From positions 868,001 through 932,000 of the forward strand of contig VJWM01000068.1 of the NCBI GenBank assembly GCA_010909165.1: a stretch of 64,000 bases of DNA, given 5' to 3'. Source of the DNA: Anthoceros angustus (Eukaryota; Plantae; Anthocerotophyta). Below the pieces are notes generated by a model. The model saw nothing but the letters and a program-made list of their open reading frames with translations, had not been told where the DNA came from and did no database searches. Positions 37,525 to 61,900 of this stretch are shown one piece after another (position 1 is the stretch's first letter; every line of letters starts with the position of its first letter). The position numbers were made by a program, and so were the translations under genes.

Positions 37525-40500
37525 TCAGTTGTGAGATTCCAGAACCTGTTTCAGCCGCTCCACGAGCTGGGCCCTCCTCGATCCCTCCAGCTGCCATGCC
37601 ACCGACGAGATTCAGTTCGCATTACTGGCAACCGGGGCTTGTATTGGGTGCCGTAACAGGAAACGAGGCAAGGAAACAAGGACACTAGGCAAGGAAACCA
37701 AAGAAACAAGAGAAGAAACGAAACGAGGCAAGCAAACAGCATCCTACCGTGTGCAGGAGGGCATCCAAGCCTCGGGGCAGAGCTGACAAGTCTGAGTTGC
37801 TCCATGAGCTCATCTCCTTCGACAGCCGGTCGGCTCGTAGTGCTTGCAATTGCTCTGCCAGAGGCTGCCCATTATTGCACCATTCCAAGAACACGGCGTC
37901 CTTGCTCCATGGATCGTCTCCAGGGCCGCTGCATGGGAGCTGAGAAGCAAGGAACCACTCCTTTATCCATTCCAATGCCTGGTTGTCGGAGCAAGAATTT
38001 CCAGCTGCGCCTTTCACATCCTGGATCACTGATTCCTCTGCTAGCCTCCGTTTCAGCCTCTTGTAGAAGAAGTTGCGGGATTCCTCCCAAGGGACTACCT
38101 GCTTGATTACCTGCTTGGCAGCCATACGATAAGAGGTGTCGTGTAGCTCGGCGAACCGAATCGCCACTTGCTTGTAGTACGGAAGGAGGTGCTTCTCCCT
38201 CGCTTTTATTTGCTGCTGCAATTCAGCCGAGCCAGTAGAAGGGCTGCTTGCAAGCTGCTGCTTCAGACTAGCCAGCTGTGGGTCAAGGCGGTGCATGCAT
38301 TCCACAAGTTCCCGAGGACGGAACTTGATCTCTATCATGCCTTCAGGCTCCAGGACTCCACCCTTGGCTGTCGTGTCGGCGTACAGTTCCACCTTATCAG
38401 GGTTGATTTTGCTGTCCACCACAACCCAGGCTCCTCCTCGAAGTTCTCCCGTCTTGGGAATGTACACAAACACCGGTCGCTTGTAGGTTCTCAGGTGTTC
38501 CACTATCAGGGAGCCAGCCTGAAGGATTCCTTCAAAAAGATCTCTTTGCCCGCCAGAGAACCCCCTCCAGTTAGCCAAAATAAACAACGGAATGCCCTCC
38601 TTGTTAAAATCCAGCAGAGCTTGAGCAGTCTTTGCAGCAGAATCGGGGAACCAAACCTGTCCTGCCTGTGGCACCACTCTTTCATGGGAGTCCAGTTGCC
38701 CAGGATCAGCAGGTATTACCTGCATCACTGTCTGTGTTTCCACAGCAACCACGCCGACAGGAATACCCCCCAGCCGCGCACGCCCAGTCACCACAGTTTG
38801 TGCCCATCCTTCCAGAGTCTCCGTGAAGCTTCCTTTGTCAAATATCCCTCCCAGCCAGCTTTCGCTGCCCTGGACACCTTTGATGGCAGCTCGTGGATCA
38901 CAGGCGGTCTCTGGTATATACTGAACCAACCTCTCTGGAGGGTCTCCCAGATCTAGCACCGGCAGCCTCCCTTCTTGAACGGACGGAACGTAGCTAAGCC
39001 ACCTTAAGATTGCAGAAACCCCTTCTAGATCGTCTGTAACTGTGAGATGTACCACACCATTCTGAGCCATTACTTTTGGCCCACCCAACTGCATGTGAGA
39101 ACTGTAAACCTCTCTACCCAGAAGCTTATTCAGTGCTGAAAAGCCTGTGAGGATGATAGGCTGATCCACCCTTTGAATGCAGCGCATGCCTAACCTGGAA
39201 AGGTAAGCACCGATACCGACTGTTCTTCCAGTGACGTAGGTCAGAGTGAACGTTTCCTGATAAACCTTCGAAAATGCACCAGCGATTGCACCACTACCTG
39301 ACAGATTCTCTACCCCTAGCCCGTCCTCCTTCCCGACAACATCATCAATCACCCACCGTATCTCCCCAGACGGCAGAATCACTTCATGAGCATTCACGGA
39401 ATCTTGGATACGTCCATAATCCTCCGGAGTTAGGTACAGGTACTGCAAGCCACGCTCAGGAGCATCTTCTAACCATCCCACTTTGAATGTGGACCTCACT
39501 TCCTCTGCTAACCCAATCCTTGCTCCAGAGTTGGCTGCAAGATAGATTAGTGGCAACTTCTTTTCACAAGCAAGATCTGTTACTGCTTTGAAGAACTTAT
39601 CCTCCCTGGGTCCAAACGCGCCTGCACCGTACGCAACATCGTTTGCCACAACCAGGATGGTGCGCCCAGACGGATACTCACCAGTCCTGAGATGAAAGTA
39701 CCATGCGACCATCCCCACGTCATTTGTCGCAACAGGTCGCTCAACCTCAATCAGGGGTGTCCTCCAGTCTGCCTCCGAGTTTGAAAATACGAGTTCAGAG
39801 GTTCTCAGGAGAGACCCTTCACCCGCCTTCCCTGCAGCTTCCCACCACTGACGTAGAGCTGTCTCAAAAACCTGCAATCAGCATGCACAAATGATGATGA
39901 TTCGCTGTTCGGGCACGCCGGACCACAGCTCCAATGCTCGTGTGATTGTCAAAGTGCACTGGAGTGAGTACACATACCAATGGAAAGTCGTAGCAATATG
40001 TCGTGTTGTTTTTTCGTGCCAACAATCTCTTTCTGTCAATTGCATCCAAGGATTTGTACTTCGTCGTGAGCGGCTTCCCATGCAAGGAGCCCACACAGCT
40101 GTCCAGTGGCGAATAATATACCACAGCGTGTTGTGCTGGATCCAGTGCTTCTCGGTACACCTATGACATGAGGTACGGTACGGGCATCTCAGAATCACAA
40201 GAACACAAGCATATAAAGATGCAAAACAGCGAAACTGAACCAACAAACTAGACATTCATTGAAACCTGGACAGTGCATGTGTGGCCTGTTGGGTTGAACA
40301 CGACAATACGCCAAGCCCCACTAGCTGAGCCAACATTCTTGATATGCAGACGAAGCTCCCAAATCGCAACAGCAAGACGGTACATGCGGGCACCTAGTCT
40401 GCCGTAGATGTTTTCTGCCAAGCGTTGAAGGCTGCTAGCAATCACCTGTGGATCGCTTCCTGAACTGGTCGCCGAAAGACTATTGCTGCAAAAGCCATCC

Positions 40501-43500
40501 ACTGGTCGAGTTTATTCACATGATACTGGCTACCCTCATTGATATTCACTGGTCAACATCAGCTTGCCAAAAAGCGCATAGGAGTACAATATAAGTTACC
40601 TTGCGTCTCCTCCGATGCTCTCCAGGCTCTGTGCTCTCAGAACACTAAGGAACATGTGGACATAATCTGCCTTGGCATTCGAATCATGAGCTGCCAATTC
40701 TAATTCTTCCAATGCTCCCTGTAGAGCCTTGATCACACTTCTGGAAACTGGAGATGTGTCCCCGTCAGCTTCCACATCTTCACCGTACATGCTGGCAGAC
40801 CGAGGCTGCCTCACAAATGTGCGAAGAAATACACGTCGAATGTTGCCAGGCTTGTCCACTGTAGAGTACATGTGCCACTGCCGATCCCTGGACGGAGCAT
40901 ATAGCAAGGAAGTAAAACCCTTCAGCTTTTCCTGCACACGAGAACGGAGCACAGTCAGGCACGAAGAAGCCTGCCCCCTTGGTATGAAGCCGCACTGGAG
41001 GATTAGTACCAGCTCTAGCAGTCTCGACAAGGGTGGTTCCACATGTCGCAGAAGAGGCTCTTCTGTGAAGTGTTGACGGTCTGTGGACCAGTGGAAGCAA
41101 TGACGTGTAGGAGGCCTACCCTCATCCCTCTGAATAACGCAGCTTATCACGCCAACCCCAGCTTTGTGCAACATCGGGCCTAAGCTCTCGCCTTTCAGAG
41201 CTTTACCAAGCTTTTCCACTCGCTCTTGGGCTTGATCTTCATCTCCGCTGCATGCATGTTGCACGTTGTCACCAGATGCCACATTGCCAAAGCAGTATAT
41301 GATTTCGAAGAATAATGACCTGCCAGGACCAGACCCCAACTTATACTACTAACCTGTCTTGAAGCGCACTCATTTGGTTCTTGATGCCGACAAGCGCCAC
41401 ATGCAAGACGTTGCCAAAGTTGGCAAATGTTTTCTCATCGTTGGATACTGACCCCTTGGTCAAAAGGTCCCCGGTTTCATGAAGAGCAGCACCGACAGCA
41501 CTTGGCAGGAAATGCAGAGAGGAGAGAATGACCATGGCTCCCCACCGCTTCACACCAGGATTGTCAGTGGCTGACGATCCTAGAGACCCACTCAGCATCT
41601 CAGTAGTCCTTGGAGGGGTTCCCTCCGAGAATTGCCAAGAAGCTATCAAGCCAGACCGATTCCACTGCATTCTGACTGATCCCGTCACCAGACGTGGCTG
41701 CAACAGAGACACAATGACGTCAGCTGGTCCTGAACTTGCAGCAACTTAACCATCCAACAGTGCCATCTCTGTTCTGCAACAATGCAGCGACTGAAGGTCA
41801 GTCATTGACATCATTGTACCATGTAAAAACAAAGACTTCCCCATTCTGAATTTGGCATCAGCCATCTGAGATCATCGCCATGGAGACAAATCGTCAAACA
41901 AGTTATACACATAGACATCACCGTACCTGATAGAGTCGACGAACATAGGTTTCAACAACACGCCTCTGTAAGGTGTGGTCACTGTGGTCGAATAATGCAA
42001 TCAGAGCATCCTCAACAGCCAAAGGTGCATCTACCAAATCATCCATTCTGTCATCAATAGCACTCCTTCTGCGGCCATGGGCTCCATCTCCAGCGTCTTC
42101 TGTGAACATTTCAAGCTGTGATAAACTTCTGGCAATGTTTGCTCTTAATTCACTTAGCTTCGTGTGTTCTAACAACTGGCGAGCCCTCAGTGCAATCTGA
42201 AGATAGTCAACAGTTAGTTTTGAACAGGACGAGATAAAATAATAACTCCATACTGCCCCCTACCGACTCAACATTGAAGGGAACTAGTACCTCAGCGTGA
42301 TTCGTGTGGCTCAACCTCGAAAATCTGATAAGCTGCTCCCGATATGCTGCAGGATTAGGGTACACGAGAGCCCCCATCAGCTGTAATATCAACTTATTTT
42401 TCCTCTTTACTCCCTGCAGAAAATTGACCCTCCTTCAGCCTGATTCCATCCTTTCAATAATTGCGAAACAAGGGTAATGATGTAGAAGCTACCTGATGCG
42501 AGAGTACAACATCCACGACCCTTGAAAGGTCCTTCTTGTGTTGAAGTCTCAGCATCTCTATGACATCAGCCTGCATCACAGCATCCAAGAGATGACGTGC
42601 AAATGCTGGTGAGCAAACTCATGTCACCACAAGCTGATACGGGTCTTGATGTTGTATCGTGCTGCATAGTGGCTGGGCTAGGCAACATACAAAGAGAGCA
42701 AACATGCAATCACAGGCATCCTTATAGAAGGTCATCCATGAAGGCACCTGCAGATTCTCACTGAAGAGCTCTTCCACAACGAGATAGTCGTGGAACAAAG
42801 AATGAACGATGCTGCAGGCATGACCTTCACGCCCATGTTCATATGACTTAGCCAGGGCCAGTAGAGGCTCAACTAGCCTCTGCTGAGGTGCTCTATCCTT
42901 GTCTGAAAATGTCCCCAGAAATGTCTGCACAACGAACTCCAAAATAAAGACCAGACTCGTCTGCAGATCCACTGCTCCAATGAAATTTACTGTTTCTGCA
43001 AATACCTCTAGCACAGCTCCAAGAGCCTTTGCAGGAAACTCAGCAGCTCCTCCATTTCCAGAGAACAAAACTTCATACTCCCTGAACTTGGTGTCTAGCT
43101 GAAGAGTTCAATGAATTTGCACACTACATCATCTGCTAATGTATCTGACCTAGCATACACAGTGCAGCTAACCATGAGAAGAGTTTCAGAGCAGATAAAC
43201 GAAACCGTGCCTGGTTTTTCAGTTCCTTGGACAGACGAGTAGCCAAGACAGCCATGCACTCCTGCCACTGTAACAAAGGCAGTTGGGGATCGTCCAGACA
43301 GCTGAGCAGTGTTTGAACAACCTGTTAACAACCGTTTGCGATGCAGAATCAGCATTTCTCAAATCAAGAGGATTAAGTCCACAACACACTAGACATAGAA
43401 TGCAATCACAGCAGATAAGATTACCTCCTCTATGTTATGCTCGTACCCGGCTAGAACCATTTTTGCAGCATTAACACTTGCTGCATACCGATGGTGTACC

Positions 43501-46500
43501 CTCCCAGGCATGGCTGTCGGTGTGCCAAGGAGAGGAAAGTTTCCGTCAAATGGCTTAGCCTTTCTCACAGCCGAGGGGTCATCCAAATCAAGTGCTGCAA
43601 TAAGATCCCCTGCCTGCAGTCAATTATAAGGTGCCAAACTCTCCTTAGACCAGAATCTTTCCTCAAGAAGACCTCGGCGTTAGGCAGCAATTTAGAGGAT
43701 AAACTCCTACCAGCATTGTTTGGCCCTCTGCCATCTTGAAACGGATGGTTCCAGAAGCAGGGGAGAGCAGTGGCATGCACATTTTCATCACCTCAACTTC
43801 TGCATATGGTGTGTCTGTGTCAACATGAGTGCCGTCCTGGACAAGAAACCTCATCAACTTGCACGGCGTTTCTGCAACTAACCGTGAAGGATCGTGATCA
43901 TTCTGCCACAAACACGAATGTAAGTGACATGACATGAAAGGCAACGTCAACCTTGAGGATAAACAGAGTGGAAGTTCTGCATACCTGTAAGAGACAGGTC
44001 CTGCCATCAATCAGGAGGCGGGTCCCTGCTGCTTCTTCCTCTGCATATAAAACATGACTGTTTCCATCGAGCTGCAAGGGGCCGGTTTCAATAGCACTCA
44101 GCATCAGAATAATGTTCCACACTGCCATCAAATACTTTCCAAGCACGTCCAAATAGAAGGGCACACCCCCACAACTAGAGAGCCACTTCCAACACTTTAA
44201 CTGCAGAGGTACTGATTCATACAAACCTGAACAAGAAGGCCTCCGTCTCGAAGAGTGTGTACTTCCGCTTCTACCTCAGATTGATTTAATGTAAGGCAAT
44301 AACTTCCTTGACCTCCCTTGGTCACATCTACCTGCAAATGTTGTGACTTCACTGCTGAGGAACCGACCATCTATGCTACTAACTAACAAATGTTGTTTGA
44401 AGCACCAATAAGCAGGCGAGATACCTTGTACTTACTCCCTTCAATGTTCAGTACAATCCTGAAGCTGACCAGAGATATGTGCTGCACATTGGGAGTTGGT
44501 CTTAAGTCGAGGGAACAAAGCATTTCATCCTGTGAACTTAACTGACTTCAAAATTTCAACATGGCACAATACCTTGGGGGGTATCTGCCCTTTTTCAAGA
44601 TATCCTATGTATTCCGATACCCTAGCTGCTGTCAGCATCGTCGCTTTCTGTGAAGGCACATCCTTGTTAGACACAAATGACATCCCCACTGAGCAGCCCA
44701 CACTCCTAGAAGACTGTATTTGAACTATTGACACCCCTTGCTTAGAACGTGAGGTGAAAATGGTCGGAAGGGCTTACATAAAGAGCTCCTCCGACTACTG
44801 ACAGATGCCATGGCGGTCTTTCTACCCGCAGACGCATTGCAATCCGACTATCAAGCCAGCCAGTGTGAATCTTGTTATCTCGGTACTCCGCAGCCTGTCA
44901 CAGCATGATCAGAATCGTCAAAGTTACAAAACTTTTGTGCCATAGAGTAACCTGAGGAGGGTCTTCACGATGAAAGCATTACATGAAGGAGGTCAACTGT
45001 GTAATCAACGTTTGTGTGTATTTCCCCACGAATATGCAATTCCTTCAAACCAAGCACCATATTTGCAATTGCTGTTGGTCGTGTTTCTCCAAATGCAAAC
45101 ACATGACCTGAACAGTTACGGCAGATTAGCACTGCTGACCAAAGGTTTCTTCATGAAAAAACATCTAGACAGCGCCCCAAACAGCCCAGCCACGTACTAT
45201 GGATAGCATCAATTCGAGGTGCAACTTACCGAATTGGGAGTCTGAAAACTCATGAATTCCTCCGCCAGACTGAAAAAACAATGGTATAAGCAAATCCTTA
45301 AAATTTTGAAACTGACCCATGTCAAGGCTTCGATAACCAGGTGGAAGGACAGCCCTTACCTTTACAGAGAAATAAGCCCAGACATTTGGCTTGCTCCGAA
45401 AACTAAGCTCCTGGAAAATGTCACAAGTCGAAGAGAATGAGATGTTTACTGCGGTTCCCTTAATCATGCAAGCATGACGACCTATGAGTTATCAAGGTGT
45501 TCCCCTTTGGATCGTTCTAGATGACTTCACCTGCAATCTCCCGCTTGTGGGTTTGAACCCATCATCAGGATCTTCACTAGTGATGCGAACAGCAACAACA
45601 TGCCCTTTTGGCTTGACAGATTGAGCAGAATCGAAATTGAACTCTGTAGCAACTTCTGCTGTCTGTCGCCAGCTATCATGCCCACCTCCTCCTTCCCTTC
45701 CATAGAACTTGCGAATCTCTGATAGAACGTTGAGAAGTCAGGATACCATCCACAGACAATAGGCTGGCTGACAACGGCCAAGTGGGTTCGCAGAAGCAAA
45801 ACCTGGCAGAGCCCACAGAGGAATGCCCATTCCGACTGCAACCTGAGCAGCTGGTACGTTGATCTCTGCTATCCATTCTGTTACAGGATGCTCTACCTGC
45901 AAACCTGGGTCAGCTCTTATGGTGTACAAATTTTGATCTGGACCAGTTGACATGACTCAGATTGATGTCACCTGCAGTCGTGGGTTCAGCTCCAGAAAGT
46001 AGAACTCTCCAGTATCCATACTATAAAGGTACTCCACAGTAGCTGCACCCACATAATTCACACTCTTCGCAAGCCTGCGGGCACCTTCTTCTAACTTCCT
46101 TACTGTCTCTGCTGGCGCAACTGTAACAGGTCCCTCCTCAATGATCTGAAACAAGAAGAGTTTTCAAACAAATGGCCTGAGCATAGCCATGTGGAAAATG
46201 CTAAAACTCCTCGTATATTGGCAAGAGCAAAACCTTTTGATGACGTCTTTGCACACTGCAGTCCCGGCTGTGCAGAGCTGCAACATTTCCATACTGATCA
46301 CAAAGCAGCTGCACCTCCAAATGGCGGCTCTGCTCCAACCCAATAAAAGCTGGATTAATACTTCAGCACGAACTCAAAACGCACAGATTAACTCAAGTGG
46401 AGCAGCATCGCAAGTAGTACAAAGGCAAGAGGCAGACCTGCGACGCAACTTTCATGACAAACACTGGAGAACCAGGCACTTCTCCCTGCACTTGCTTGAA

Positions 46501-47680
46501 AAGTGCACGGACCTCATCATCATTGTGGACCTGCATTGTCAACCTCATTGCTTTTGTGAGCAATCAGTGGGGCATTTCACCGCAATGAAAACACCCTACG
46601 AAAGTAGAAATGTCTTTAAGTTACAGAAAAACGTTCCCAATGATGCTATACCTTTCGAATGCCTTTACCACCACCGCCCCAAGAGGCCTTTATCATGACT
46701 GGGTAACCAACAATTTGGCATGAACTCAGTGCCTCTTCCGTTGTGTGTACACATGCTTGGCTGTAGATCTCCTCTGGAATAGGCTCCTGACAGCTCTCAA
46801 ATGCAATTTTCACCTGTATAACCAAGAGCACTCTAGATTAACTGTCACATCACCAAGCAAAAACCACAGCATCCATGCCAACCATTATGCAAAGGCAACT
46901 AACTAACAAAACGTCCAAGAGCAACACCTCGAACTGGGAATATTAGCAAAGACAAAATTCGATAGCACGATAGCTTACACCAGATCCACTCCAGGGTAGT
47001 GTCGGCACACCGGCAGCCTGAGCAATGAGAGAGGAGCCAATTTTATCCCCAAGAGCAGCCATGGGTGCGGCTGGTGGCCCTAAAAAGGCAATCCCACGCT
47101 CTGTAAGCGCATCAGGAAGTTCTGGGTTCTCCGAGGCGTGACCCCACCCTGGCCACACAGCCGAAACTCCTGTACGTTCAGCAACCTGGCACAGAAAAAC
47201 TCAAATTCAATCCTCCTGCCAGAATCACACAAACAACAGCCAGCGGAAAGGACCCGAATTCCAATCCCAAACAACCCAACAACAGATGCAGGACAACGAG
47301 GGGCAGCACAGCACCTCCACAATAAGCTGCACATTGGCATAATTATTGTTGTTAGTTCCACCAGGCACCTCCACAAGCTGGTCGGCCATCCGAATGTGCT
47401 CAGCATTGATCCGCATGTCCTCCGGCGTGGCCATGGCCACAAGAAGAATAGCCCGCTCCACCCCGAATGATTCATACGCCCAGGTCCTCACGCTGCGCAT
47501 AAACTTAACTGCCGCCATCCCATTGTTGGCAATGAGAATACTGTAAATCGGCCTGTTTCCTCCCAGCGCGTAGCAGTACTCCTCCACAAGCGAAACATTG
47601 CTTCCAGCCTTGACCGGCGCGACTCCAGCGCTCTTGGTAACCTTCCCGGCGAGCCCATCAGACGCCCAGATCTCCGCCAT
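37525..47680 (-). CDS. ACC1: Multidomain (homomeric, eukaryote-type) acetyl-CoA carboxylase, about 30 exons
   Basis: BC domain: [47 protein letters not shown]|VEHPV. BCCP: AEVEVMKM (biotin Lys). CT domain: [31 protein letters not shown]. Last exon 37590-37525 ([21 protein letters not shown]). ATG 47680; no evident transit peptide. Confidence 0.96.
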
Positions 47681-49351
47681 CGCCCAGCCTCCCCCTCCGG
47701 GCCCGACAACCCAACACTCTAACAAACTCACTCCTCAGGCGAAAGCGGGGGCCATCCGCCGACAGACCTGAACAACGAACAAGCAGAAATCCAAATCCGA
47801 CTTCCACAGTGTCCGAGACGTAGCATCTAAAAACAGGCCTCTCCAACACGAGCTCACTATATACAGCATCCGCCCACCTGAACACAAACTCCCGATTTCC
47901 ACACTGATTCCAGCCTCAGGCCACAGCCCACCAGGTCCATTCGGATTCCCGACTCCGATCAGAGAAACCCAACACTCCGCGCCCGCTCGCCAGCTTGCCA
48001 GCTCGCCAGCTCGGCCCCGGACTGGAGAGGAAAGGAATGGACGAGAGAGGCTTGCGGGCTGCAATTCACGATCAGGCTTCACAGCTCTGCGGGGCCGGAC
48101 GGTGGCAGCAAAATGCTGCACATGCCAGAGGAGTGCGGAGACAGTAACTCCACGAGTTCAGAGGTGCGGGACATACCGGCCCACCGGGCTAGACGGGACC
48201 TTTGCGATCCCGGCCCGGCAAAGGGGCGGCCGGGGAGGTCTAGCCCGGGGGCTCGTCGTTGTCGCCGTCTCACCAACTGGGATTCACTCGCTCGGCGTGA
48301 CAGACCGGGGTGAGCGTTGGGCAGGGCTGCTGGTGCCTTGGTTTTGCCCCGACTTCACTTCATCTTGTTCTAAAGGGAGGAGTAGGAGCAATGCAGGTAG
48401 AGTTCCAACTGCCCTTGCCTTCTCTTCCTGTTTTTGACCACTTGTTGTTTCTCCATATTTTAAATCGGACTGGGTATATTTTCACACTAGATTAGGACTC
48501 GGTGAGTCAGTCGTCTTTGTCGCCTTGCATGGCATGCAATAATGTTGCAGAAGGATGAAGTGCGTTAGAGGAATATAGAATTGTTCCCAGTTGTAGACAC
48601 AACTTTATGGAGGGAGGAGCTACGGATTTTCTATGTAATCTATTTTTCATGACTATTTTTCAATGTAACTCTAGATTGACTAGCTTGGGTATCACCCCAT
48701 GGATATTCTATTGACAGTGCGTCCTGGTCAATGTTCACATATACTAATCCACTAAGTGTGTGTTTACACCCTATGTTGCACTCCCTTCCCTTCTCCTTCC
48801 TCTGATATGCTTGGTAGAGGTGGGTCCTTCTCTCCTAGTTGCATAAATTCGGGTTGGAACACTGTACTTCCCTCCATCAGCTTCGATGCTGCGTCCTTCT
48901 CAGCTGATGCTTGGCCGGTGAGTCCATCGTCTAGGAACTTTTGTTGTGGAGGCTCTCCCACGAACTTCTTAAGCTCTCCTTGGCCTTTGGTGAATGCTTG
49001 CAAGCAAGCTAGAATATCTTATACGACTACTAGTCCTTGGCCTTTGGTGAATGATTACAAAATCAATAATGTGTGTGATGTGGAATCCCTAGACATAGCA
49101 TTAAGGATTTCTATATATGTGGGATATGCCTATTATTAAAGACATAATATCAACCTAACTTCTCATTACCAATCTAAACTTTCTGTTTGGATTTGTAATA
49201 TCTCGAATCCCTAACTATAGCAAGGCTGATCTCTATATATGTGAGACAAGGTCTAGTACAAAACAACATACCCATCAAGCTAACTTGTATAAGGCTGTAA
49301 GACCCAAGTTGTAAGATCCTTCTAAGAGTTGTTCATCGACTCTACCATACC

Positions 49352-51185
49352 ATGGCCGCAACCTTTGGAGAATTGATTGATATGTTGCAAAACTTAATAC
49401 TTGAGCAAGTTGAGAAAGATGGAAATGTACAATTCGGACGAAAACAAGCCATACTAAATTTGGTGAGCTATCATACCCTGCTAAATAAGTTAATAAATAG
49501 ATGCTTAATAAATTAGTAAATAAATTGAGTTAAACTGAATGAATTACTTGTTCTTAATAAGTTTTCATGTTAAACTTCTTTGTAGAATGACCATGTGCAT
49601 CACTTATTGAAACGTATTCATGCACCAAACAATAGTGGTCATGGAAAACGAAAACAAAACCATGTCATTGGGAGTGAAGACTTAGAAGATCAGTTTATTT
49701 ATGTTGTACTTAGTATTGTGTGTGTGGAATATGCATGTGGGCTCAATATGTTGGAGAGCAATTTCTACGAGCAACATTCTCATTGCACTTTTGGTCGTCC
49801 TCAAAGATTTAAGAAATTGATTCTTAAGATGGGAAAAGCTCTTGGCCAGGGTTTGTGCATGCTTCCTCATGCAATAAACTTGAGACACTTAGAAACACAA
49901 CGGGAAATGAAGATACGGAAGTGTAGCAAACTTTTTGAAACATTAGTAAGTTTCTTCAATTTCTATTGCTTTATGTATCAACAACTTTAATTGGTTACTA
50001 ATTAATAATTGGTATTCATAATAAAAAGATTTTTTTTGTGTAGATTTTAACTTTAACATTGCTATACGATCTTTGGAGAAGAAGAAAATTCAACAATATA
50101 CCCGTTATGGGCACATATGGATAAGGAGCTTATTCAAAATGGTTTAACCATCCTTTTGGTAATAATGATACTCCTTGCACAAGAATTTAAAATTGATTTA
50201 CAAACAGCGATCATAAGCGAGTTCTCGAAAGGATTTCCAAAGAACAATCAACCTGTAAGGAAAAAAGGCCTTAAAATGCATTTATGAAATGACATCAATC
50301 ACCTTAAAAGCTCTCACCCGGTTTCAAGCATCTTAAAAATTTACCTCCAATCTTTGGTGAAGATAGATATAAATATCTTTCTCCTTAGTGAAGTATGGAG
50401 CTATCTTTTCTTCTTACGCTCCAATCAACTGTAATTGCTAGAACTTTGTAGAAAGATCTATAGATTTGGAAGGAAGATGAATAAGATATTTGATATGAAT
50501 TTTCCCCTAGTGGTTGCTAGGCTATTGCTCGAGTTGTGTGTGGAATATGCATGTGGGCTCAATATGTTGGAGCAATTTCTACGAGCAACATTCTCATTGC
50601 ACTTTGGTCGTCCTCAAAGATTTTAAGAAATTGATTCTTAAGATGGGAAAAGCTCTTGGCGAGTTTGTGCATGCTTCCTCATGCAATAAACTTGAGACAC
50701 TTAGAAACACAACGGGAAATGAAGATACGGAAGTGTAGCAAACTTTTTGAAACATTAGTAAGTTTCTTCAATTTCTATTGCTTTATGTATCAACAACTTT
50801 AATTGGTTACTAATTAATAATTGGTATTCATAATAAAAAGATTTTTTTTGTGTAGATTTTAACTTTAACATTGCTATACGATCTTTTGGAGAAGAAGAGT
50901 GAAATTCCAACAATATACCCGTTATGGGCACATATGGATAAGGAGCTTATTCAAAATGGTTTAACCATCCTTTTGGTAATAATGATACTCCTTGCACAAG
51001 AATTTAAAATTGATTTACAAACAGCGATCATAAACAGGATTTCTCGAAAGGATTTCCAAAGAACAATCAACCCTGTAAGGGAAAAAAAGGCCTTAAAATG
51101 CATTTATGAAATGACATCAATCACCTTAAAAGCTCTCACCCAGAAGCCACGCAATCTTAAAAATTTACCTCCAATCTTTGAGTGA
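49352..51185 (+). CDS. Putative ~266-aa protein with two tandem degenerate dCTP-pyrophosphatase/MazG-like domains; exons 49352-49462, 49586-49945, 50856-51185 (a damaged duplicate of exon 3 starts at 50044)
   Basis: ATG in good context (ACCATGG). Donors GTGAGC and GTAAGT, acceptors ctttgtAG and ttttgtgtAG, both introns phase 0 and the frame stays open (37+120+109 aa). Domain 2 LYDLLEKKSEIPTIYPLWAHMDKELIQNGLTILLVIMILLAQEFKIDLQTAIINRI aligns without gaps, by eye, to plant dCTPP1 LSEIFQWKGEV..G.PDWKEEEKVHLGEELSDVLLYLVRLSDACGVDLGKAALRKI (recalled from memory). Confidence 0.65.
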
Positions 51186-51372
51186 AGATAGATATAAATA
51201 TCTTTCTCCTTAGTGAAGTATGGAGGCTATCTTTTTTCTTCTTCTGCTCCAATCAATCTGTAATTGCTAGAACTTTGTAGAAAGATCTATAGATTTGGAA
51301 GGAAGATGAATAAGATATTTGATATGAATTTTCCCCCTAGTGGTTGCTAGGCTATTGCTCGAAGTTGTGTGT
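49716..51372. repeat. ~820-bp tandem duplication covering part of exon 2 through the 3' end of the MazG-like gene
   Basis: Copies at ~49716-50533 and ~50534-51372, with TTGTGTGT microhomology at all three boundaries; copies differ mainly by small indels. Confidence 0.9.
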
Positions 51373-51615: not shown

Positions 51616-52894
51616 TGTGATCAGCATTCCTCGGAGATGGGAGACCAGAGACATGAAGGGCGTGGCAAGCTAAAATGCAAGAGTGTCTTGATTCTTGGGA
51701 ACAAGCTGGAGTAGCCCGCGCCCCTATCCACGCACGTGTTCGTTTCTCCTCGATTGCGGTTTTGAGTCTGATAACTAGCTAGCTAAGTTAATGTTATCTG
51801 GGTAAGCCCAATCTGTTGTCCGTCTAACCTGGTTAGCCTATCTCCCTCAACCAGCTTCTTAATGCGTGCCCTCGACTGCTTGTTGCTGCGTTCTTAGTCT
51901 TGGCCTCAGTTGTGGCCTTGGCCTCGGCCTTTGGTGAATGTGTGGGAGGGAAAACCCCGGGGCTCCCGAGGCTTCCCCTCAGCGCCACACTTATCCCATC
52001 GCCGTCAGACGTTGGGTTTCGTCCCATGAGACTCGTGTGAAAGTTCGAGGTCTTGTGATGGCGATCGCTACTGCGGTGACACAACTTCGACTTTCTACAC
52101 AAGCAAGGCGCCTACTCTCCCCTCACGGTGCACCACTTGCCGAAAATCACCAATCTCACCGACCGACACGACACAGTGCGAGTTACGCCTTAGCGAGGAG
52201 CCTATCACGGCGCCGGGGACCTGGTCCACACATAATTTCGTCCCTACTTAAGACCAATCTTCTCCACTCGGGGCGCTCTTTTACTTGATTTGGGATTTGT
52301 CCTTAGGCTCACCATGGCCTTCCACTAACACCTACACTCTAATCCTCTACTCATCTTCTCATCCTCTTCCTCCTATTCTAACCTCGATTCGGGCTTCTTG
52401 GCTTCACTCGCCCTTACGGCTGGCACTTGGTCGGCCTCCACCAAGTTCTTCCTTGGGCGGTTGCTATGAGTTTGACACAGACGTGAGCACCTCCAGTCTT
52501 TCCCGTGGATTAACCTCAAGCCGAGAGCAAAGCAATTTCCGGCAACCATTCACAAGGGAGCAACTCGTTTAGGCACTTGCGAGGTGTCCTCCACCAACAC
52601 TCGACCACTTCTTCCTCTCTACCGGCTGCGTTGGCTCACGGTACGCGAAATTCCTTTACAAGAGCAAAGGACTCATGAGTATGGAGCGCAAGACATGATA
52701 CTTTACTTTGTGAAATCCTCCTCCTCTTATAGGAGGCCTTCCACATACAACCTCCCCTTAGGTGACCCTCTGCAGTCACCTTTCCAATATTCTATTATTT
52801 CCTACATGACATTTAAGGCATCTAAGTCTACTACGATAGGTAAATTCTATTCTAGCAACTTCACCTAGATCATCCTTAAAGAATGTCATCTACA
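51616..52894 (-). mobile_element. Probable 3' LTR of retroelement A (~1.28 kb)
   Basis: On the minus strand it starts TGTAGAT at 52894, immediately after the purine tract AATGGAAGAATAGGAAGGATAGGCGA (PPT); TATA-like CCTATAAGAG at ~52730; ends ...ATCACA at 51616 (imperfect terminal inverted repeat). Left end less certain. Confidence 0.55.
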
Positions 52895-55800
52895 TCGCCT
52901 ATCCTTCCTATTCTTCCATTCAACATTTATGGTCTTTGACCACTGATCCTCACCCTGGGTGCGTGTCCTCATGGATTGGCTCCTCGCCCTCCTTTTGCTC
53001 TTGCCCTTCCCGGATCTTCTTCCTAATGTGGGGCAAGTACAATTTGCCCTTCCTCTTCTCGGGCACAGTTCCTCTTATCAGTGATCGCGCCTCCTCCGCG
53101 CTTAAGCGCCCTTCTTCCGCCTCCGCTGGCGCTCCTTCTTCGGCACACTAGCGGTGGTGGCGGACTACGGTGGTGACTACCTATGGTAGTCTTTCTTCTT
53201 CTTCTTCTCCATCGGTGATGTCTCTTGGGTTGATCCTCTTGCTCCTTTCCTCATTTGGTTGTCCATACCTATCATGGAGCATTTTCAAAGTCTTCCCCAT
53301 TTCACCGATGTTGTCACTAACTCTCGGGCCCTTTTGCGTTGGTCTCCTCTCTTCAGCTCCTCTCTCTTCGTGGGGTGAGAACTTCACCCCTCCCCTTCCT
53401 CGTGGATCGCTCCTGATCTCCTCGGTGGGTTGTTTCTCCCACCTCGCCTTCTTCTCCGGTATGCTCTGGACCCCGGCTCCTTCATTCACAGGCCGGGCCC
53501 GACTCCTCAGCAGGCTCCTGCCGGTGCCCTACCCGTAGTCAGCGGACTACGGCGTGTGGCTACCTACGGTGCAGCGGACTACGTGGTGGTGGTCACCTGT
53601 GGTAGGGTGACCCCTGAGGCGGGCTGTCCCCCTCCTTGCTCCGCCATCTTCTCCGCTCCGCTCCTCCTCCTGTCTCCTCGGACTCCTCGGAGTCCATGTC
53701 GCTCGTGGCCTCATCAAAATCGGAGGCCTCGCACTGCTGCTCCTTCTGTCATCATCATGAGGACCCAATGTCCTCCTCTTGTGGCCAATAAGACTTCATT
53801 GTTGGCCTTCAAAATCTGTTGTGGAGGTGAGCCCCCAAGCTGTAATCGCATTTGGAGATCATCAATCTCAGTGGGCCACTCTCCATCCTCACACCTACTC
53901 TTGTAGGCATCTCTTGATGGTCAATTCCCCACCTTCACATGGAGGTTCACGTTCTCCTCCTACTTCTCTTTGGTTGGCCATCTTTGCAGGGCATAATCTT
54001 AAAATCTTCTTCCTTACCACTAGCATCACGTACCACCTTCTTGTGGTGCTCCTCCTCTGGGACCTCTTCCTCTCCAAGTCCCCTGTTGAGCAAGCCCTTC
54101 CCTCGCTTGAGCATTCTTCTCGCTCCACAATTCTTGGTCTTGCGACTCGCTCACGCTTCTCCTCAAATGTCGGGTCCCAATTCTTCTTCCATGTCCCGGA
54201 TTTTGATGGCTTGGGTAGCCATCACAGCTCTGTCGTCCATTTTGGACACCTTCTCCTTCCTAGAGCCTCGTTTTGCCCTTCGCTCTTGCTCTAATTGGGC
54301 AAAATGCTCTTCATATACATCTCCATGAGTCTTTTTGGTGGTTGCGACTCTCTCCTCCGTTTGAGCCAACCTTCCCTCCAAGACCTTTTCCCTTGTTGGT
54401 CTATAAGATCGCGGAGCTTCTCCATAGCCTTCTCCAACTTGGCTGCCTTCTCATCGGACTCCATGGCCCATTGCCACTTGGTCCTGCCCTCCTCTCAGTC
54501 ATCTCTTGGGCCTTGTCTTCCTCTGGCATGCCACAGGAGGGTTCTAGCCCCTTCAAAATCTACACGGTGAGTGCTTCACAAGCACTCGGCCAAATCTCAG
54601 GGGCCATTGCCTGGCCGGCTTCTTCTGAAATCTCAGCTCCTTGCACTCCTCGGGCCATCAGCGGCGTGGTCCCTCACGTCGTATGCTCTTCCTCCTAGCG
54701 GGTGGGGCAGGCGCCGCTGCAGCGCCTCCTTCCTTCCCCCTACTGCGTGGCGCCTCTGGCGTGGGGTGCACCTCCCGGTGGTGCTCCCCAGCGGTGAGTC
54801 GCTACCTACCTGGTGGTGGTGGCGCCTACTGCAGTGAGTGCCTCCAGGGGTAGGTGCGTGCCTCTTCCTAGGCACCCAAAATGGTGGGGACTCCTCCCAC
54901 CCTTGGGGTTATCACCTCTGGTAGTCCTCCTCTCGCACTACCATGGCCTTCCTCGGCGGATCTCCTCTCCTTCCCTTGCTCTTGTGGGGAAAGGCCTCCT
55001 CCGCAACCTTGTTGCCTCTACTTCCTCCGCCCTTGGTCCTGTGCTTGTGGAGTCGGCCTCCCATGGTCTTCCTTAGGCAAAGGCAAAGGCTCTAAACTAG
55101 TGGGTGGATTATCTCAAGGATGCCAAGCATCCTCAAGCTCCCTTGGTGAGAGCCTCTCTCCCACAAATGCACCAAATAGGTGCTAAGATGAGGCCTTGGC
55201 CTTCCTCATCCACGAATTTGGCCTAAGGAGCTTCTCACATGGTGTATAGGCCTCATACATAATGGTGCCCCAATCGGCTTGGCTCCTCAAAATCTTCCAC
55301 AAAATTGAAGGAAGTTGGTGCGAAATAAGAAGTCCGCTGATAATTCACCAACCCCAACACAATCTTTGCAGCCTCCACTTGACTCCTTGATGCTTCGTCT
55401 TCCACCATTCTTGGCGTGGGCCTTCACTCCTCCATCCATCATGTGGACTTCTGGAATCTGAGAGGGCAATCCTCTTCCCTCCATTTGTCCTCTCGAGAAG
55501 AGCAATGCCTGAGCTCTCCTCCTCCGGCCTTCCATACACTTGCCTAATGCTTGGGTCCGGTGACGGAGGATCGGTCAAACCCCTCTCCGAGGCGGCAAGG
55601 CGCCGATTGATGGAGGTTGATATAACACTCCTCAATGAATTCCAAATTGGTGTAGGCCCATTGGCGGCCATACACCCATCCCAATTGGATGTTATCTTCC
55701 TCTGCCCAGAAATCCACCAAATCCCTGGGATTGAGCTGCCCTGCAAAGCACGTAAATTGGGGCATCACAACTTCATCTCCCCCTGGTGGCGCAGCCTCCG

Positions 55801-56412
55801 CTGCTGGCTTCTTCCCTTTTCTTCCTCGCGAGGAGGAACCCTTGGCATGCGGTTCCTTCCCCTTGCCCTTTCCTGCTCGAGGCATGGCTCCTTTCCACTC
55901 CAAGTGCTTCTAGGGGACTAAATTACTTCCCAATTTCAAGAGTTGGCAATTCCCAGAGCTTCCCTTCTAGGTTCTCACCCCCGTGCCACTGACAACAAAG
56001 CCCAACCTAAGACACAAGTGCACGTTAGTCCTCGTCGAACACCCGTTTGTTCGTAATTACTTCCGCTCCTCTTCCCCAGAAGCCGGGCCTTGCTTCGCAA
56101 AATGTCCGATGCCCCTCATAATGTCGTCACTCTCGATGTTGGCTGCGTCACCCCAACTGTGCTTCTCACAGCGTGGTTCCACTGCGTGGTGTCAAGCTCC
56201 TTTACGCTCCACGACCTTCGGCGTTTTCCTCCTGCGCTCCTTCTCCTTCTAGCTTCGAGCTCAGACCGCAGATAGGGTTCCTCCTTCTGCCTCAAACATG
56301 TGCCTAGCTCCCTTTTGCGCCCAATTCGACCGCGGCGGCATTGGCGAGGGCAATGGCAGCTTTCCTCTCCTCTCCTCTTACGTTCCGACTCAGTCTGACG
56401 AAGTGAAGAACG
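52895..56412 (-). mobile_element. 3' internal region of LTR retroelement A (Ty3/gypsy OTA-like) carrying a degenerate extra ORF
   Basis: Lies between PPT/LTR A and LTR B and contains the frameshifted ORF listed below; no gag/RT/IN motifs visible. Confidence 0.6.
53150..55885 (-). pseudogene. Frameshifted retroelement extra ORF A (basic N-terminus, plant-transposon-protein-like domain, coiled coil)
   Basis: Fragments in shifting frames: MPRAGKGKGKEP...QWAYTNLEFIEECY...ADWGTIMYEA...RPRPHLSTYLVHLWE...EGRLAQTEERVATTKK...AYKSRCEDGEWP. Confidence 0.6.
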
Positions 56413-57776
56413 TGTAGACTCTGGACTTCCTTGGGGTTAGGAAATAAGTGGGGTTTTGTTTTTCGTGTAGGTCGAATAGTAAAATAAGGCGGAAAGGGAG
56501 GAATAAGCACGGATGGTGCTCCTGACTGGAGTATACTCCGGACTGGAGTGGGTAACCCGACCCTGGTCCACTATGATGTCACAGCGACCGGTAGCAGGAT
56601 AAGTCAGGACACCACTGGTCAAAAGCAGGATAAGTATGCTGCAGTAATTTAGAAGTTGAGTCGTGAGGACGAATCGGCGCCACGTGGGCGGCCCGGGTGG
56701 AGGTCGGGCATGCGGCCAGACTGGGAGCCTTGCCAGTGGGCCGTTAGGCAGTATTCCGCGGAGCGGCGGCATAAGGCCAGTACAGCGGCGAAGGTGGCAA
56801 GTTGGTGCACTTCAGCGACGAGGAAGAGGCACCCTCCCGCCAGTTACTTCCTAACGCGCGGGAGAGGCCTCTGCGCGACCTTGAGATCTGCTTTCTTGGC
56901 TCCGCAACCCAGCTCAGCCTATCTCTTTGAACGCCAGCTCGGCTCACCGCTGAGGTTGAAGCGGCGAATGCGGCGGAAGAGGGCGATCGTGCAGGTCCCT
57001 GTCGGCAATACGTCGACGAAAGGAGAAGAAGGCGATGGGACCCAAAAAGGCTGCGGAGTATGGGAGCCATGGAACTGGTAAGAGCGCAACATTGTAACTC
57101 GGCGCATTATCCGGACTTTGGGCCATGGCCGAGGAGGCGGGAGGATTAGTCGAAGAATGGCATAGGCGTGTTCCAGCCGTATGGACGTTTGTGATGTCAC
57201 TGATCCCGGGAGTTCGCCGGGAAGATGCTGGCAGCGCCAACAAGGAGTTAGTCCCAGAACCTCGGGAGGATCCCGGAGATGGACCTTGGAGGTCACGAGG
57301 CGCTTACAACCGCCAACGGAGGAGGTTGGGCGTGAGTCGAGCCCCTCAAGGCGTAGGGAAAGATAGAGGCGGCGGCGTCTTTGAACGCAATGGACAACCA
57401 ACGGTGGTTGATATCGGACTGATGTATGGGTGAGGCGTAGCCGAATCATTGTCCATCGGAACTTGCTCACCAAGGTGGATCACCTTAGTGATAATTCTTG
57501 GTGTTCTGCATGCGCTGTGAGCGGGCAAGAGGGCTGACCGGGAAGGATCATCTTCGCGGGTTCAGCCTGTGAGGCCTGTCGGTGAGGCGAAGCCACCGCT
57601 GTAGGACTATCCCATACACCGATCCATGTGGGGGATTACTGAACTCGAAGGATGGGGAGGTAGGCGGGCGCTCGGAAGGGGTTGGCGCCCATCAAGGAGA
57701 GCGGGCAAAGCGCTTGAGGTAGAGGCCCGACCCACGTGAGTGTAACCTTGTGTCTAGGGACACCGTGAGGTCTACA
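56413..57776 (-). mobile_element. 3' LTR of retroelement B (1364 bp)
   Basis: Perfect 7-bp terminal inverted repeat TGTAGAC...GTCTACA; on the minus strand it is directly preceded by PPT-like TTGAGGGTGAA (57787-57777). Confidence 0.75.
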
Positions 57777-58152
57777 TTCACCCTCAATGTCGTTGTAGGC
57801 CTAGGATTCGGCCCCAAGGGAATGGTTTGTGCCAAGAGACGCTAACTTCTATCACCACCGACCTTTGCCTAAGTCGTGCTCACCGCTATCACTCTTACCT
57901 ATCTACTCAACTACTACTACCTTCCGACTTGTCCAACGACCGCAAATCCCATTTCACGACCGCAAATCTCATTCCACAACCGGGTAGTTACGACTCACCG
58001 AGGTGGGTCCCACCAAACCCTAGCAACTCATCTCGGCGCCATGGGATCCCTAGCACGGCACACTGTGCTCACAGATCGGACTTTATTTGGCACTCCACAC
58101 TTCATGCACCCACCAATTCCTAGAGACCAAAGTTCCTAGGATACCCGCGCTC

Positions 58153-58179
58153 ACACACACACACACACACACACACACA
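58153..58179. repeat. (CA)n microsatellite
   Basis: cacacacacacacacacacacacaca. Confidence 0.9.
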
Positions 58180-58949
58180 GGCGCCACCCCACACGGTTTC
58201 TACTAGAGACTTTGTTTTCCTTGTGCACTTTCCACGCCAAAGACCGGTTTGAGTTCTCAATTCACACAATTCTCCACCGAGGCCGCCTCCACCCGCCACT
58301 TACTCTTCCCACTTACGATCTCACACCTGATCGCTGCATGATTTGATCTCTCCTTCACCCGATCTCTCTCTCTCTCTCCCCTCCCTCAATTCGCCCACAG
58401 TGCTACCAACCATGCACTCACACAATTCGATTTGAACACAACTTTCGGTTTAAAGGTGAAGGAGGAAGAACCGGGCGCGAACAGCGCATGCAGCAAGCTG
58501 CACCGCCCCGCCGATCCCTTGGCTTCCTCCTCCGTTGTCGACAAATTGCTCCATCACCTCCTTCCCTCCGTTGCGGAGCAAGCTCTCGACCACTCCTGTG
58601 AGCTGCCTCGCACACCACCTCTCAATCGGACGTCTCCAACCATCCACAGCAGCGTGGGGATCTCAACCGAGTTATCTGTTGTGGTGGGCAAAGTTGCCCC
58701 TCTTATACATCGGCCGGCCGCCTGCTTTCCCATTTCTAGATCCTAAAAAAGGGACGCACCCACAATTCTAAGCGATCTTAGGTCCGGGGCATCCTACCCA
58801 AATTTCATTCCTAGGATGCTACCACCTATTGCCTCGCTATCCGCCCTCCCGACTCGTCACTTTGGCCCTTCGTCCTCCATCGCCGCCACGAGCCCTCCCG
58901 CCACGCCGATCCGACGGGTTTTCCACAGGACTTCCACCTCACCGCCACT

Positions 58950-61900
58950 GGACGCCTAATTGAGGGCATACCGCCCGGAGCTTCCGCCTCCGGGCCTATT
59001 GCCGAGGATTACCACGGTTCCTCATCCACCCAAGCTCGGACCTCCTCTTCACTCAACTCCTCCAAGGTCGCCTCCGCATAATAGGGGCCAATCCCCACAC
59101 TGGCGCAATGGTAGAAGTATGCACTTGGTCCTCACTTGAGGTGGTAGGACCCGATCCTCCTATTTCCACACGCACATGGGCGGTGAAGTTAAGCACGCGT
59201 TCCCCATTCACATATAGACCGTGCACGAAGTTTCCTCATCCATGTGCCGCAACATAATAGGACCTCTCAGTGAGGTGCTTACCCCCTCCTCCGTAGACTA
59301 CACCGTTGCTGGTCCATGTCCTCGCGGTGCCGCGCCGCCCCCATTGCCGCCCGCCACTACCACTGTAGTGGTCTCCACGACCGTCGTTGGTCCGGCCGTG
59401 GTAGGTGTTTGACTACCTTGGCTGCTTGTCCTTCCCTCGATAGTGCCTTCCACTACCCCCGGCCGTAGTCCTGCCACCTCGCTTCCCCTTCTCTTTTCTG
59501 GTTCGCCACGTGCCTCATCCTGCTCCTGCTTATACTGCTCCGCCAGCTTATGGACCTTCTCCACCGAGGCCGCCTCGCCTCCGGGCTCGCAACAACTCTC
59601 CCTGCATCTCTGGTTTGACTCGTGGGCATCCTTGATTTGAGCCATGGCGCTTCCTGACTCGTCATGGCTGCGGCTTCTCACAGGCCTGCACAAATCCTCC
59701 TCAAGCTTGATCTTATCTCCTCTAAGGCCCGCTTGTCTTCCTCCAGCTTGCTTGGCTTCTCCTTCCCAAACCCGGCCTTCACCACTTCCTCCGCCGCCTT
59801 GCACCGAGCCATGTGAGAGCCAAGGCCGCTTGGTCCAACAACCGCTTGGGCCCGGATCATCGATGTCGTCGGCTCACCAATTCCACTGCGGCGGCCCGTG
59901 CGGGCGCCATCCCTCCTATTTCCACACATGGGCGGTGAAGTTAAGCAGTTCCCCATTCACATATAGACCCGAGCACGTAAGTTTCCTCATCCATGTGCCG
60001 CAACCTAATAGGACCTCCTGCTGTAGCTGAGGTGCTTACCCCCTCCTCCCGTAGACTACACCTGGTTGCCTGGTCCATGTCCTCGCGGGGTGCCGCGTCG
60101 CGTCCTGTCGCCCCGTCCATTGCCGCTTCCGCTACCACGGTAGTGGTCTCCACGACCGTCGTTGGTCCAGCAGCCGTGGTAGGTGTTTCAGCTACCTTGG
60201 CTGCTGTCCTTCCCTCCGGTAGTGCCTTCCACTACCCCGGTCGTAGTCCTGCCACCTCGCTTCCCCTTCTCTTTTCTGGTTCGGCCACGTGCCTCATCCG
60301 TTCCGTTTATCGTTCGCCGACATGGACCTTCTCCACGAGGCCGCCTCCGCTCTGGGCTCAACAACTCTCCACTGCATCTCTGGTTTGACTCGTGGGCATC
60401 CTTGATTTGAGCCATGGCGCTTCCTGACTCGTCATGGCTGCGGCTTCTCACAGGCCTGCACAAATCCTCCTGAAGCTTGATTCTTATCTCCTCTAAGGCC
60501 CGCTTGTCTTCCTCCGGTTGCTTGTTGGGCTTCTCCTTAAATCAAACTGGCCTTCACCACTTCCTCCCGCCCTTGCACCGAGCCATGTGAGCCAAGGCCG
60601 CTTGGTCCAACAAATCTTGGGCCCGGATCATCGATGTCGTCGGCTCACAATTCCACATTGCGGCCCGTGCAGACGCCATCCCTGTCGAGCACCTTCCTTC
60701 CCAACAAAGTGCGCACCACCACCCGGCTGGCCCACCTCTGCTGCTGGAGTCCCTTGAAAATCTCTTCCCATGCCGAGGAGGGTCCGCTCGAGGTCGCCCT
60801 AATTCCTCTGGCCGGCTCATCATCATCGCATCCAGTCGGCAAAATTTTCTTCCTCGGACCGCGCCTCTTCCTCCGCCACCTCGCCCGCCGCTTTCATTTT
60901 CTTTGCTTTTTCCTGTAGCGCGCACCCGCTGACCAGGACGCGTCCACCTTCACTTTTTTTTGGGACCGTCTGCTCCGGTCTTCCTCTTCTTCTTGGTAGA
61001 AATTTCCTTCTCTTCCTCGAACCGCCTGCCGCCATGGACTCCCACCGTCCGATTCCTCCTCAATTTCCTCCTTAGGCTCCTCCGCTTCCACTTCACCTCG
61101 ACGGCTTCCACATATGAAGGAGGCCACAATTTCTACCTCTGGCGGGCAATTAGCATGCGCATAAAGATGAACTAGGAATGGTGAAATTAGAGAGGGCCGG
61201 GGTAGGAGAAATCGATTCAACCTTTCTTCACTCAACTTCTCAAGAGGATTCGTCCCCCGATTTTCCTTGACAACTTCATGGAGGAACAACAAGTGGTCGG
61301 ACAAATAATCCTCGCTTCAGTGTCAGAAAGGAGAAGCCATCCGCTGCACTCCATTAACTGGCTGCTACACCGCCCAACCATTGGGTTCCGGATTCGCCCG
61401 CCTTCACTGGCGGCGGGCCGGCCGTGCTCCTTTTCCGAGAAGGTTCCATCACCAAACCCCCTGCCTCCTCCTTGCTGCGCCCATACACTTCCCTAACCAA
61501 TGCCAGGTCCCAATCCTGAGGTTTTGCTCTAATTCCCTCGCCCGGTTGCTTGTCTTTTAGGTGGCGAGCGCACTCCTGCACCAGTCCCGAATTCGCGTAA
61601 TTCCACCGCTTCTCCATGAAGCCCAGCCCGAGCTCCTTCACCAGGCCCCCAGCTCGGACTTTCCAATGGTCCATGTTTGGCCATTGGGCAAGCGCAATCT
61701 CAGCTGTGGCTTTGGGCGCCATCCTTCCGCAGTAGTCCCCCTGGTCTCGCGCCTCAGACGGGTGCCACCTCGCCGCGAATTTCCTGGCAAGGTCAGCTTC
61801 CAGGGTTCCTACCTCCTCCGCAAGCCGCGCCGCCGCAGCGCCGCCTTCCTTCCACAGCGGGGGTTGCGACTTCACTGGTGAGGGTTCGAGGCGGCCCTCC

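Follow-up and report, generated by a model that had tools for sequence, protein, structure and literature searches.

A candidate non-catalytic dCTPP1-derived gene, probably internally duplicated, in an AT-rich island of the hornwort Anthoceros angustus

Introduction

What is encoded by an AT-rich island that lies between an acetyl-CoA carboxylase gene and transposon-like sequence in the hornwort Anthoceros angustus, and has its reading frame been kept by selection? The original prediction, made from the 64,000-nucleotide stretch of DNA analysed here (the window), placed in this island a three-exon gene for a tandem, catalytically degenerate relative of dCTPP1, a pyrophosphatase of the all-alpha (MazG-fold) type. 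In plants, dCTPP1 is an extremely conserved protein that awaits characterisation, and its Arabidopsis representative is presumably At3g25400. E66 and E95 are among the metal-binding acids of dCTPP1. Roles for W47/W73, Y102, E63 and D98 have been described (PMC13291643 and PMC13510388), and in the tetrameric enzyme the Trp47/Trp73 pocket spans the dimer (PMC13291643).

Methods

Eukaryotic dCTPP1 loci were fetched by a DNA-pattern scan (107 loci, 605 kb), and a profile was built from their C-halves. Database searches were run exon by exon, the three-exon join being translated only for the frame check. For neutral evolution, six plant genes were left to decay in simulation, with an AT bias and with indels ignored, until their identity had dropped to that observed.

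Results

Genomic context of the candidate gene

The window is a piece of a compact, intron-rich plant genome with a GC content of ~50%, and it contains genes for HesB, HDAC, an ECA-type Ca-ATPase, two NLP proteins and, on the minus strand, a homomeric acetyl-CoA carboxylase (ACC). The NLP-type genes form a tandem pair (19747–29134, minus strand) that is 66–82% identical within matching blocks; upstream of the pair lies a satellite (30060–32970) with ~26 copies of a 112-bp unit, including partial units and indels. The ACC gene (37600–47680, minus strand) stands head-to-head with the candidate dCTPP1-derived gene, the two start codons being 1.67 kb apart, and an N-terminal transit peptide is not evident in ACC exon 1.

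The CWG-depleted island occupies ~2.3 kb (49000–51350, borders approximate, no strand assigned), with the ACC promoter on one side and TE-like sequence on the other. Its GC content is 33% vs 46–57% in the neighbours, in line with the strong AT-richness at a gene/TE boundary that had been noticed before, the TE-like sequence lying on the 3' side. This TE-like region (52000–59000) is GC-rich, strongly skewed and CWG-depleted (0.65), carries broken minus-strand coiled-coil ORFs and is without any Pfam match. A 27-nt motif occurs twice just 5' of the island (48977–49003 and 49034–49060) and again 570 bp 3' of it (51921–51947), and these copies may be TE remnants on either side of the dCTPP1-derived gene. 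Within the island, a putative plus-strand promoter (49069–49246) comprises two 56-nt imperfect direct repeats (49069–49124 and 49191–49246, 71% identity), each with a TATATA box (49112 and 49234); a TATA-like box lies 118 nt 5' of the start codon.

Gene model and tandem repeat

Three exons, GT/AG intron ends, phase-0 introns and an open frame of 266 codons, as first described, are all present on the plus strand. Exon 1 (49352–49462, 37 codons) starts in a strong context (ACC-ATG-G), would encode the N-half of a putative unit 1 and ends at the position of the plant NLLLAL motif. Intron 1 (49463–49585; 123 nt, 24% GC, phase 0, GT-AG) occupies a position that we infer to be homologous to that of the land-plant dCTPP1 intron. 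Exon 2 (49586–49945, 120 codons) would encode the unit-1 C-half, a short linker and the unit-2 N-half; the last of these opens with an internal ATG (49829–49831, AAG-ATG-G) that aligns with the start Met of exon 1 and probably marks the place at which translation of the duplicated unit once began. Exon 3, the unit-2 C-half, is intact in a copy at 50856–51185 (109 codons plus TGA). At the composition of the island, frames as long as those of exon 2 (120 codons) and exon 3 (109 codons) would be open by chance with probabilities of 7e-5 and 2e-4. The 266-codon gene is predicted to be spliced and expressed.

The second intron had been drawn at 910 nt, and here the model has to be redrawn, as that span consists of a 98-nt intron, a frameshifted exon 3 copy, a 3' region and a duplicated part of exon 2. 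The real intron 2 (49946–50043, plus strand, phase 0, GT-AG) has an identical twin at 50758–50855. It is followed by the first exon 3 copy (50044–50365, plus strand, end approximate), whose assembled frame is shifted by differences of the deletion type, probably sequencing errors. This arrangement belongs to a tandem duplication on the plus strand, in which copy A (49719–50541, 823 bp) holds the intact exon 2 and the frameshifted exon 3, and copy B (50535–51372, 838 bp) holds the frameshifted 3' part of exon 2, intron 2, the intact exon 3 and the 3' region. The copies are 95.8% identical, and the earlier gene model joins the intact part of each, exon 2 from A and exon 3 from B. A 7-bp TG-repeat microhomology marks the duplication junction (50535–50541) and recurs at 49719–49725 and 51366–51372.

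Of the 18 clusters of difference between the copies, 17 include indels and none is an isolated transition, and a central 224 bp that includes the entire intron is identical. Bases are missing from copy B close to its start and from copy A close to its end, so that the deletions lie toward the junction. Of seven CWG sites within these error zones, six differ between A and B, the background rate being 0.28 (p = 0.003). Because the differences are nearly all indels, the intron is identical and CWG sites are enriched, they are best read as unpolished long-read errors on CHG-methylated DNA, without evolutionary divergence, and the two copies are probably identical in truth. An old, diverged duplication was rejected on the indel-dominated differences and the identical intron. 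Published Anthoceros assemblies combine nanopore sequencing with Pilon (PMC8075897). The 7-bp microhomology fits a very recent real duplication and a microhomology-jump assembly artefact alike, and the protein would be unchanged either way. Further tandem duplications are seen at 59156–59914/59912–60683 and 60732–62266/62501–64000 (periods of ~770 and 1,760 bp, 86% identity, mostly indels), the former with a short motif common to both copies at the junction; both probably reflect an artefact of the same kind, due to long reads or microhomology, in TE sequence that is methylated.

Relationship of unit 2 to land-plant dCTPP1

Against the profile of eukaryotic dCTPP1 C-halves, exon 3 scored 22.9 bits (E = 4e-6) and ranked first among the 1342 six-frame segments of the window, with a register of 10-to-10 and its own frameshifted twin as runner-up, which bears out the dCTPP1/MazG ancestry and gapless alignment proposed for the second domain. 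When anchored at the splice acceptor, it reached z = 8.3 vs shuffles (z 7–8 across tests) and scored above all 11,559 natural windows. The Pfam MazG-like family (PF12643) was matched at E = 0.028 and 15.1 bits, below its 27-bit cut-off, all four matches in the PDB were dCTPP1/RS21-C6 (best E = 0.14), and ESM features fell into MazG-like clusters (0.87).

In 62 genomic land-plant dCTPP1 loci a phase-0 GT-AG intron separates NLLLA[LM] from VGEVGE, and exon 3 begins exactly at this site, ungapped from codon 1; comparison with plant genes therefore sustains, for exon 3, the intron homology that had been suggested. Since exon 3 starts at a plant-specific intron site that is lacking in algal and protist loci, unit 2 descends from a land-plant dCTPP1 gene. 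Algal and protist dCTPP1 loci were without the intron before VGEVGE, and several other introns were present in the C-half of the algal-type loci L043, L082, L105 and L130. A horizontal origin from a prokaryote was rejected on the plant intron position.

Identity between exon 3 and plant dCTPP1 is 20–28% over 60 ungapped residues (~75% divergence), and mainly the hydrophobic core is retained. At the positions of human E63/E66/E95/D98/W73/Y102, unit 2 carries T/L/G/I/K/I. The cytosine pocket of the enzyme comprises W47/W73, Y102 and H38/H51 (PMC13291643), and the RDWxxFH motif was not recognisable in the N-half of either unit. Judged from these residues, catalysis and cytosine binding by unit 2 are very unlikely, and the suggested role as a nucleotide sensor finds no support, given the loss of the base-stacking Trp and Tyr from domain 2. 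The unit-2 N-half, at the end of exon 2, scored at background when anchored (p = 0.14), and a dCTPP1 N-half HMM found nothing.

Unit 1 and a probable internal duplication

The internal duplication proposed for this gene is favoured by tests anchored at the intron and not by unanchored ones. Exon 2 scored 2.3 bits against the dCTPP1 profile when unanchored (E = 13 window-wide, not significant), unit 1 had an hhalign probability of 0.9%, ESM recognition of exon 2 was low (features 0.78), and no direct similarity was found between the C-halves of the two units. From these values one could argue that unit 2 is the single real dCTPP1 unit, that everything up to two thirds of the way through exon 2 is an unrelated N-terminal extension and that the second intron match is chance. 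Two independent tests anchored at intron 1 run counter to such a reading, with p = 0.009 for the start of exon 2 and p = 0.03 for the end of exon 1 vs natural proteins (Fisher-combined ~0.003), as does the Met-to-Met match between exon 1 and the later half of exon 2, which begins with Met (p = 0.009 for the protein and z = 3.5 for the DNA, in an alignment chosen after inspection). The exon 2 motif ACGLNM, which matches the family ACGVDL, and the match of SEDLEDQFIY to GEELSDVLLY (28.4) argue in the same direction. A single unit is thus improbable in our assessment, and internal duplication of a dCTPP1-type unit is likely. Introns 1 and 2 were without DNA similarity to each other (z 0.6).

Within this probable unit 1, the H-x-x-H of exon 2 falls at the ExxE position of the first helix in register 0. 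For the second helix, the one-residue offset first proposed for domain 1 scored 10.2 vs 28.4 for register −3 over the same columns; the ACG motif that it was said to keep is present, and the offset is one of at least two possible registers. Under register −3 an E is retained, and the positions of E95, D98 and Y102 hold D, D and Y, at the cost of a 3-residue deletion and a 4-residue insertion, and over the entire unit-1 helix the two registers are near equal (~26 vs 24). Unit 1 thereby carries H, H and then D, D or Q, Y at the metal positions, depending on the register, with A at the equivalent of W73 and Y102 possibly retained. The loss of the metal acids that had been claimed for both halves stands for domain 2 (T/L/G/I) and lacks support in domain 1, where the best-scoring register keeps D-x-x-D.

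These residues open the possibility that unit 1 was remodelled into a transition-metal site built from His-x-x-His, Asp-x-x-Asp and Tyr, with Zn/Mn/Fe binding or a new hydrolytic activity and with unit 2 as its inactive partner. Such remodelling would agree with the E, D, D and Y kept by the best second-helix register, with His at both ExxE positions in register 0, with the 10 His and 5 Cys of exon 2 and with the existence of asymmetric two-domain MazG proteins. It is weakened by the deletion and insertion that the register needs and the similar helix-wide scores, by the loss of the W73 equivalent and by the fact that AT drift favours CAT His codons, and we regard it as quite unlikely.

Probable fusion of the two units

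The fusion of the halves hinges on one base. At 49808–49810 (plus strand) copy A reads TTT and copy B, at 50621–50624, reads TTTT; four T at 49808 would bring TAA straight after unit 1. Unit 2 would then start from its own ATG 17 nt on, and two small proteins would be made, their frames being adjacent or bicistronic. Two proteins are suggested by the TTTT and TAA of copy B, the predominance of deletions among long-read errors, the canonical proteins, which stop a few residues past the KYP motif, and the strong context of the internal ATG. The sequence after ACGLNM fits the family slightly better in the copy-B reading than in copy A (6.6 vs −2.0), and the copy A reading at this point is not certainly right. 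Yet the first 130 bp of copy B are poorly polished, with three other deletions, one of them at CCAGG, the space is too small for a terminator and a promoter, and nuclear genes of land plants seldom give bicistronic mRNAs; two separate proteins are very unlikely. Fusion is favoured because copy A is the better-polished copy at the disputed T, and we hold it to be very probable.

Selection and a probable methylation footprint

In the simulated neutral decay, 60 codons stayed stop-free in 1–3% of runs, and changed sites in the candidate lean more conservative than simulated ones (p 0.02–0.15). Because neutral decay keeps 60 codons open in so few runs, the frame was maintained by selection through most of the divergence, which says nothing on present use.

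The observed/expected ratio of CWG is 0.36 in the island vs 1.75 in ACC. Leu is encoded by CTG in 0 of 40 cases in the gene vs 57 of 168 in neighbouring genes, and Gln by CAG in 3 of 15 vs 46 of 68; GAG and AAG drop less. Since CWG and the CTG and CAG codons are depleted, the AT-richness is better explained by CHG methylation and deamination over a long time than by a foreign origin. A class comprising 14% of the genes of A. agrestis is marked by H3K9me1 together with methylation in the CG and CHG contexts; these genes are silent in the thallus, and 9.3% of them are expressed in sporophytes (PMC10952607).

CHG methylation is also expected of a silenced relic, and the CWG depletion and CWG-linked base-call errors would suit a gene that was once selected and is now CHG-methylated, untranscribed and possibly broken by a real duplication. 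Its first exon 3 copy is frameshifted, and nearest-acceptor splicing would stop after ~26 exon 3 codons; the surroundings are TE-like, and the junction microhomology is compatible with a real duplication. However, indels without isolated transitions and an identical intron are unlike real divergence, two more indel-rich tandem repeats occur within 15 kb, neither the promoter nor the Kozak context nor the splice sites are damaged, and the frame survived deep divergence. A relic is conceivable, if unlikely, and a maintained gene remains our preferred reading.

Structure prediction and database searches

Single-sequence AF2 models were all-helical with pLDDT 45–48. In both models a helix at 2–12/14 is followed by a loop and a long helix from 29/30, with exon 2 helices at 2–12 and 30–63 (low confidence), and these positions agree, at pLDDT 45–48, with the expectation for the dCTPP1 family. 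Foldseek/VIA/Atlas fold searches with the low-confidence models returned zero structural matches.

A phmmer search of exon 3 against 1.84 billion representatives gave zero relatives, hornwort sequence being seemingly absent from the collections; the best protein-database match of ACC exon 1, at 77–89% identity, likewise suggests that close relatives are absent from them. Word searches with exons 2 and 3 and exact look-ups yielded no relative, exon 3 had no informative match in phages, plasmids and a metagenome scan, and an Rfam search was blank or uninformative. An RNase P match at E = 0.011 in the PHROGs/NCBIfam search was taken as chance. Synteny followed through ACC relatives led just to distant short contigs, apparently from mosses, and in the literature no paper was found on hornwort dCTPP1 or MazG pseudoenzymes.

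Discussion

Proposed origin and role

We propose that a native land-plant dCTPP1 gene, whose single intron (phase 0) separates NLLLAL from VGEVGE, was duplicated first, and that this copy then duplicated internally, from the start codon to near the stop, and fused. The product would be a gene of three exons, with introns of 123 and 98 nt, for one chain of ~266 aa with two dCTPP1-type helical units; the 823-bp repeat would stem either from a duplication through microhomology in the very recent past or from misassembly of identical sequence with unpolished long-read errors. As the dCTPP1 site spans two subunits, the fused units would fold as a pseudo-dimer within one chain, in which the hydrophobic core of the helices persists and dCTP hydrolysis and binding are lost. 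It may serve in protein interactions, as a module that evolves fast and pairs with itself into a pseudo-tetramer; that it poisons canonical dCTPP1 is possible, and less likely at 20–27% identity. The gene would lie in CHG-methylated chromatin beside transposon sequence, which would account for its AT-richness, and it would probably not be expressed in the thallus that was sequenced, its use being limited to a particular stage, e.g. the sporophyte. Taken as a whole, a fused, catalytically dead dCTPP1 pseudo-dimer that acts via its helical surfaces in a stage-restricted manner has, in our judgement, an even chance of being correct.

PP2A-B56 docking through a C-terminal LxxIxE motif, part of the original prediction, is dropped from this proposal, as 19 chance motifs occur in 91,148 six-frame residues (~5% per 266 aa); the motif is found in the copy-B frame only. 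A different stage-specific hornwort protein can also be envisaged, in which unit 1 has a metal site or new activity based on H-x-x-H/D-x-x-D next to a structural unit 2, or which poisons canonical dCTPP1 and so tunes 5-methyl-dCTP clearance; we think this doubtful.

Comparison with known systems

Land-plant dCTPP1 (RS21-C6/XTP3TPA, PF12643) resembles unit 2 in its phase-0 intron site and in a gapless alignment over 60 residues. It is a single-unit, highly conserved protein with invariant ExxE..ExxD, W73 and Y102, whereas the candidate is probably doubled, with the site lost or remodelled. No degenerate second unit was found near any of the 107 fetched eukaryotic dCTPP1 loci (605 kb). By descent the candidate is a member of the dCTPP1 branch within the all-alpha NTP pyrophosphatases, while lacking the ExxE..ExxD acids and cytosine pocket of an active enzyme.

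Two-unit proteins are known elsewhere in the all-alpha NTP-PPase superfamily: dimeric dUTPases carry two such units, and in E. coli MazG just one of the two domains is active. Two-domain MazG proteins of E. coli and M. tuberculosis hold tandem all-alpha units in one chain (PMC10014863), as proposed here. Two-domain MazG and the dimeric dUTPases are ancient and retain an active acidic metal site; in contrast, the candidate would represent an independent, lineage-restricted duplication of the plant dCTPP1 branch, with a plant intron and without an intact canonical site. Hornwort cluster-P2 genes, which are protein-coding and marked by H3K9me1/H3K27me1 and CG and CHG methylation, offer a further likeness, the candidate being likewise short, TE-adjacent and marked by a CHG footprint, although its methylation is read from sequence and base-call errors alone.

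Significance

Copy-to-copy indels at CWG sites in this assembly are readable as a methylation footprint, and its tandem repeats distort gene models. The locus offers a candidate non-catalytic protein, its clearer half, unit 2, being without catalytic residues while the frame is open. If the proposal is true, the hornwort would possess a methylated, TE-adjacent gene that evolves fast under constraint, and a fused, catalytically remodelled dCTPP1 paralogue under selection would be a new architecture in the dCTPP1 branch. Read as a neo-enzyme or a pseudoenzyme, it would be the first plant MazG-fold protein of such architecture.
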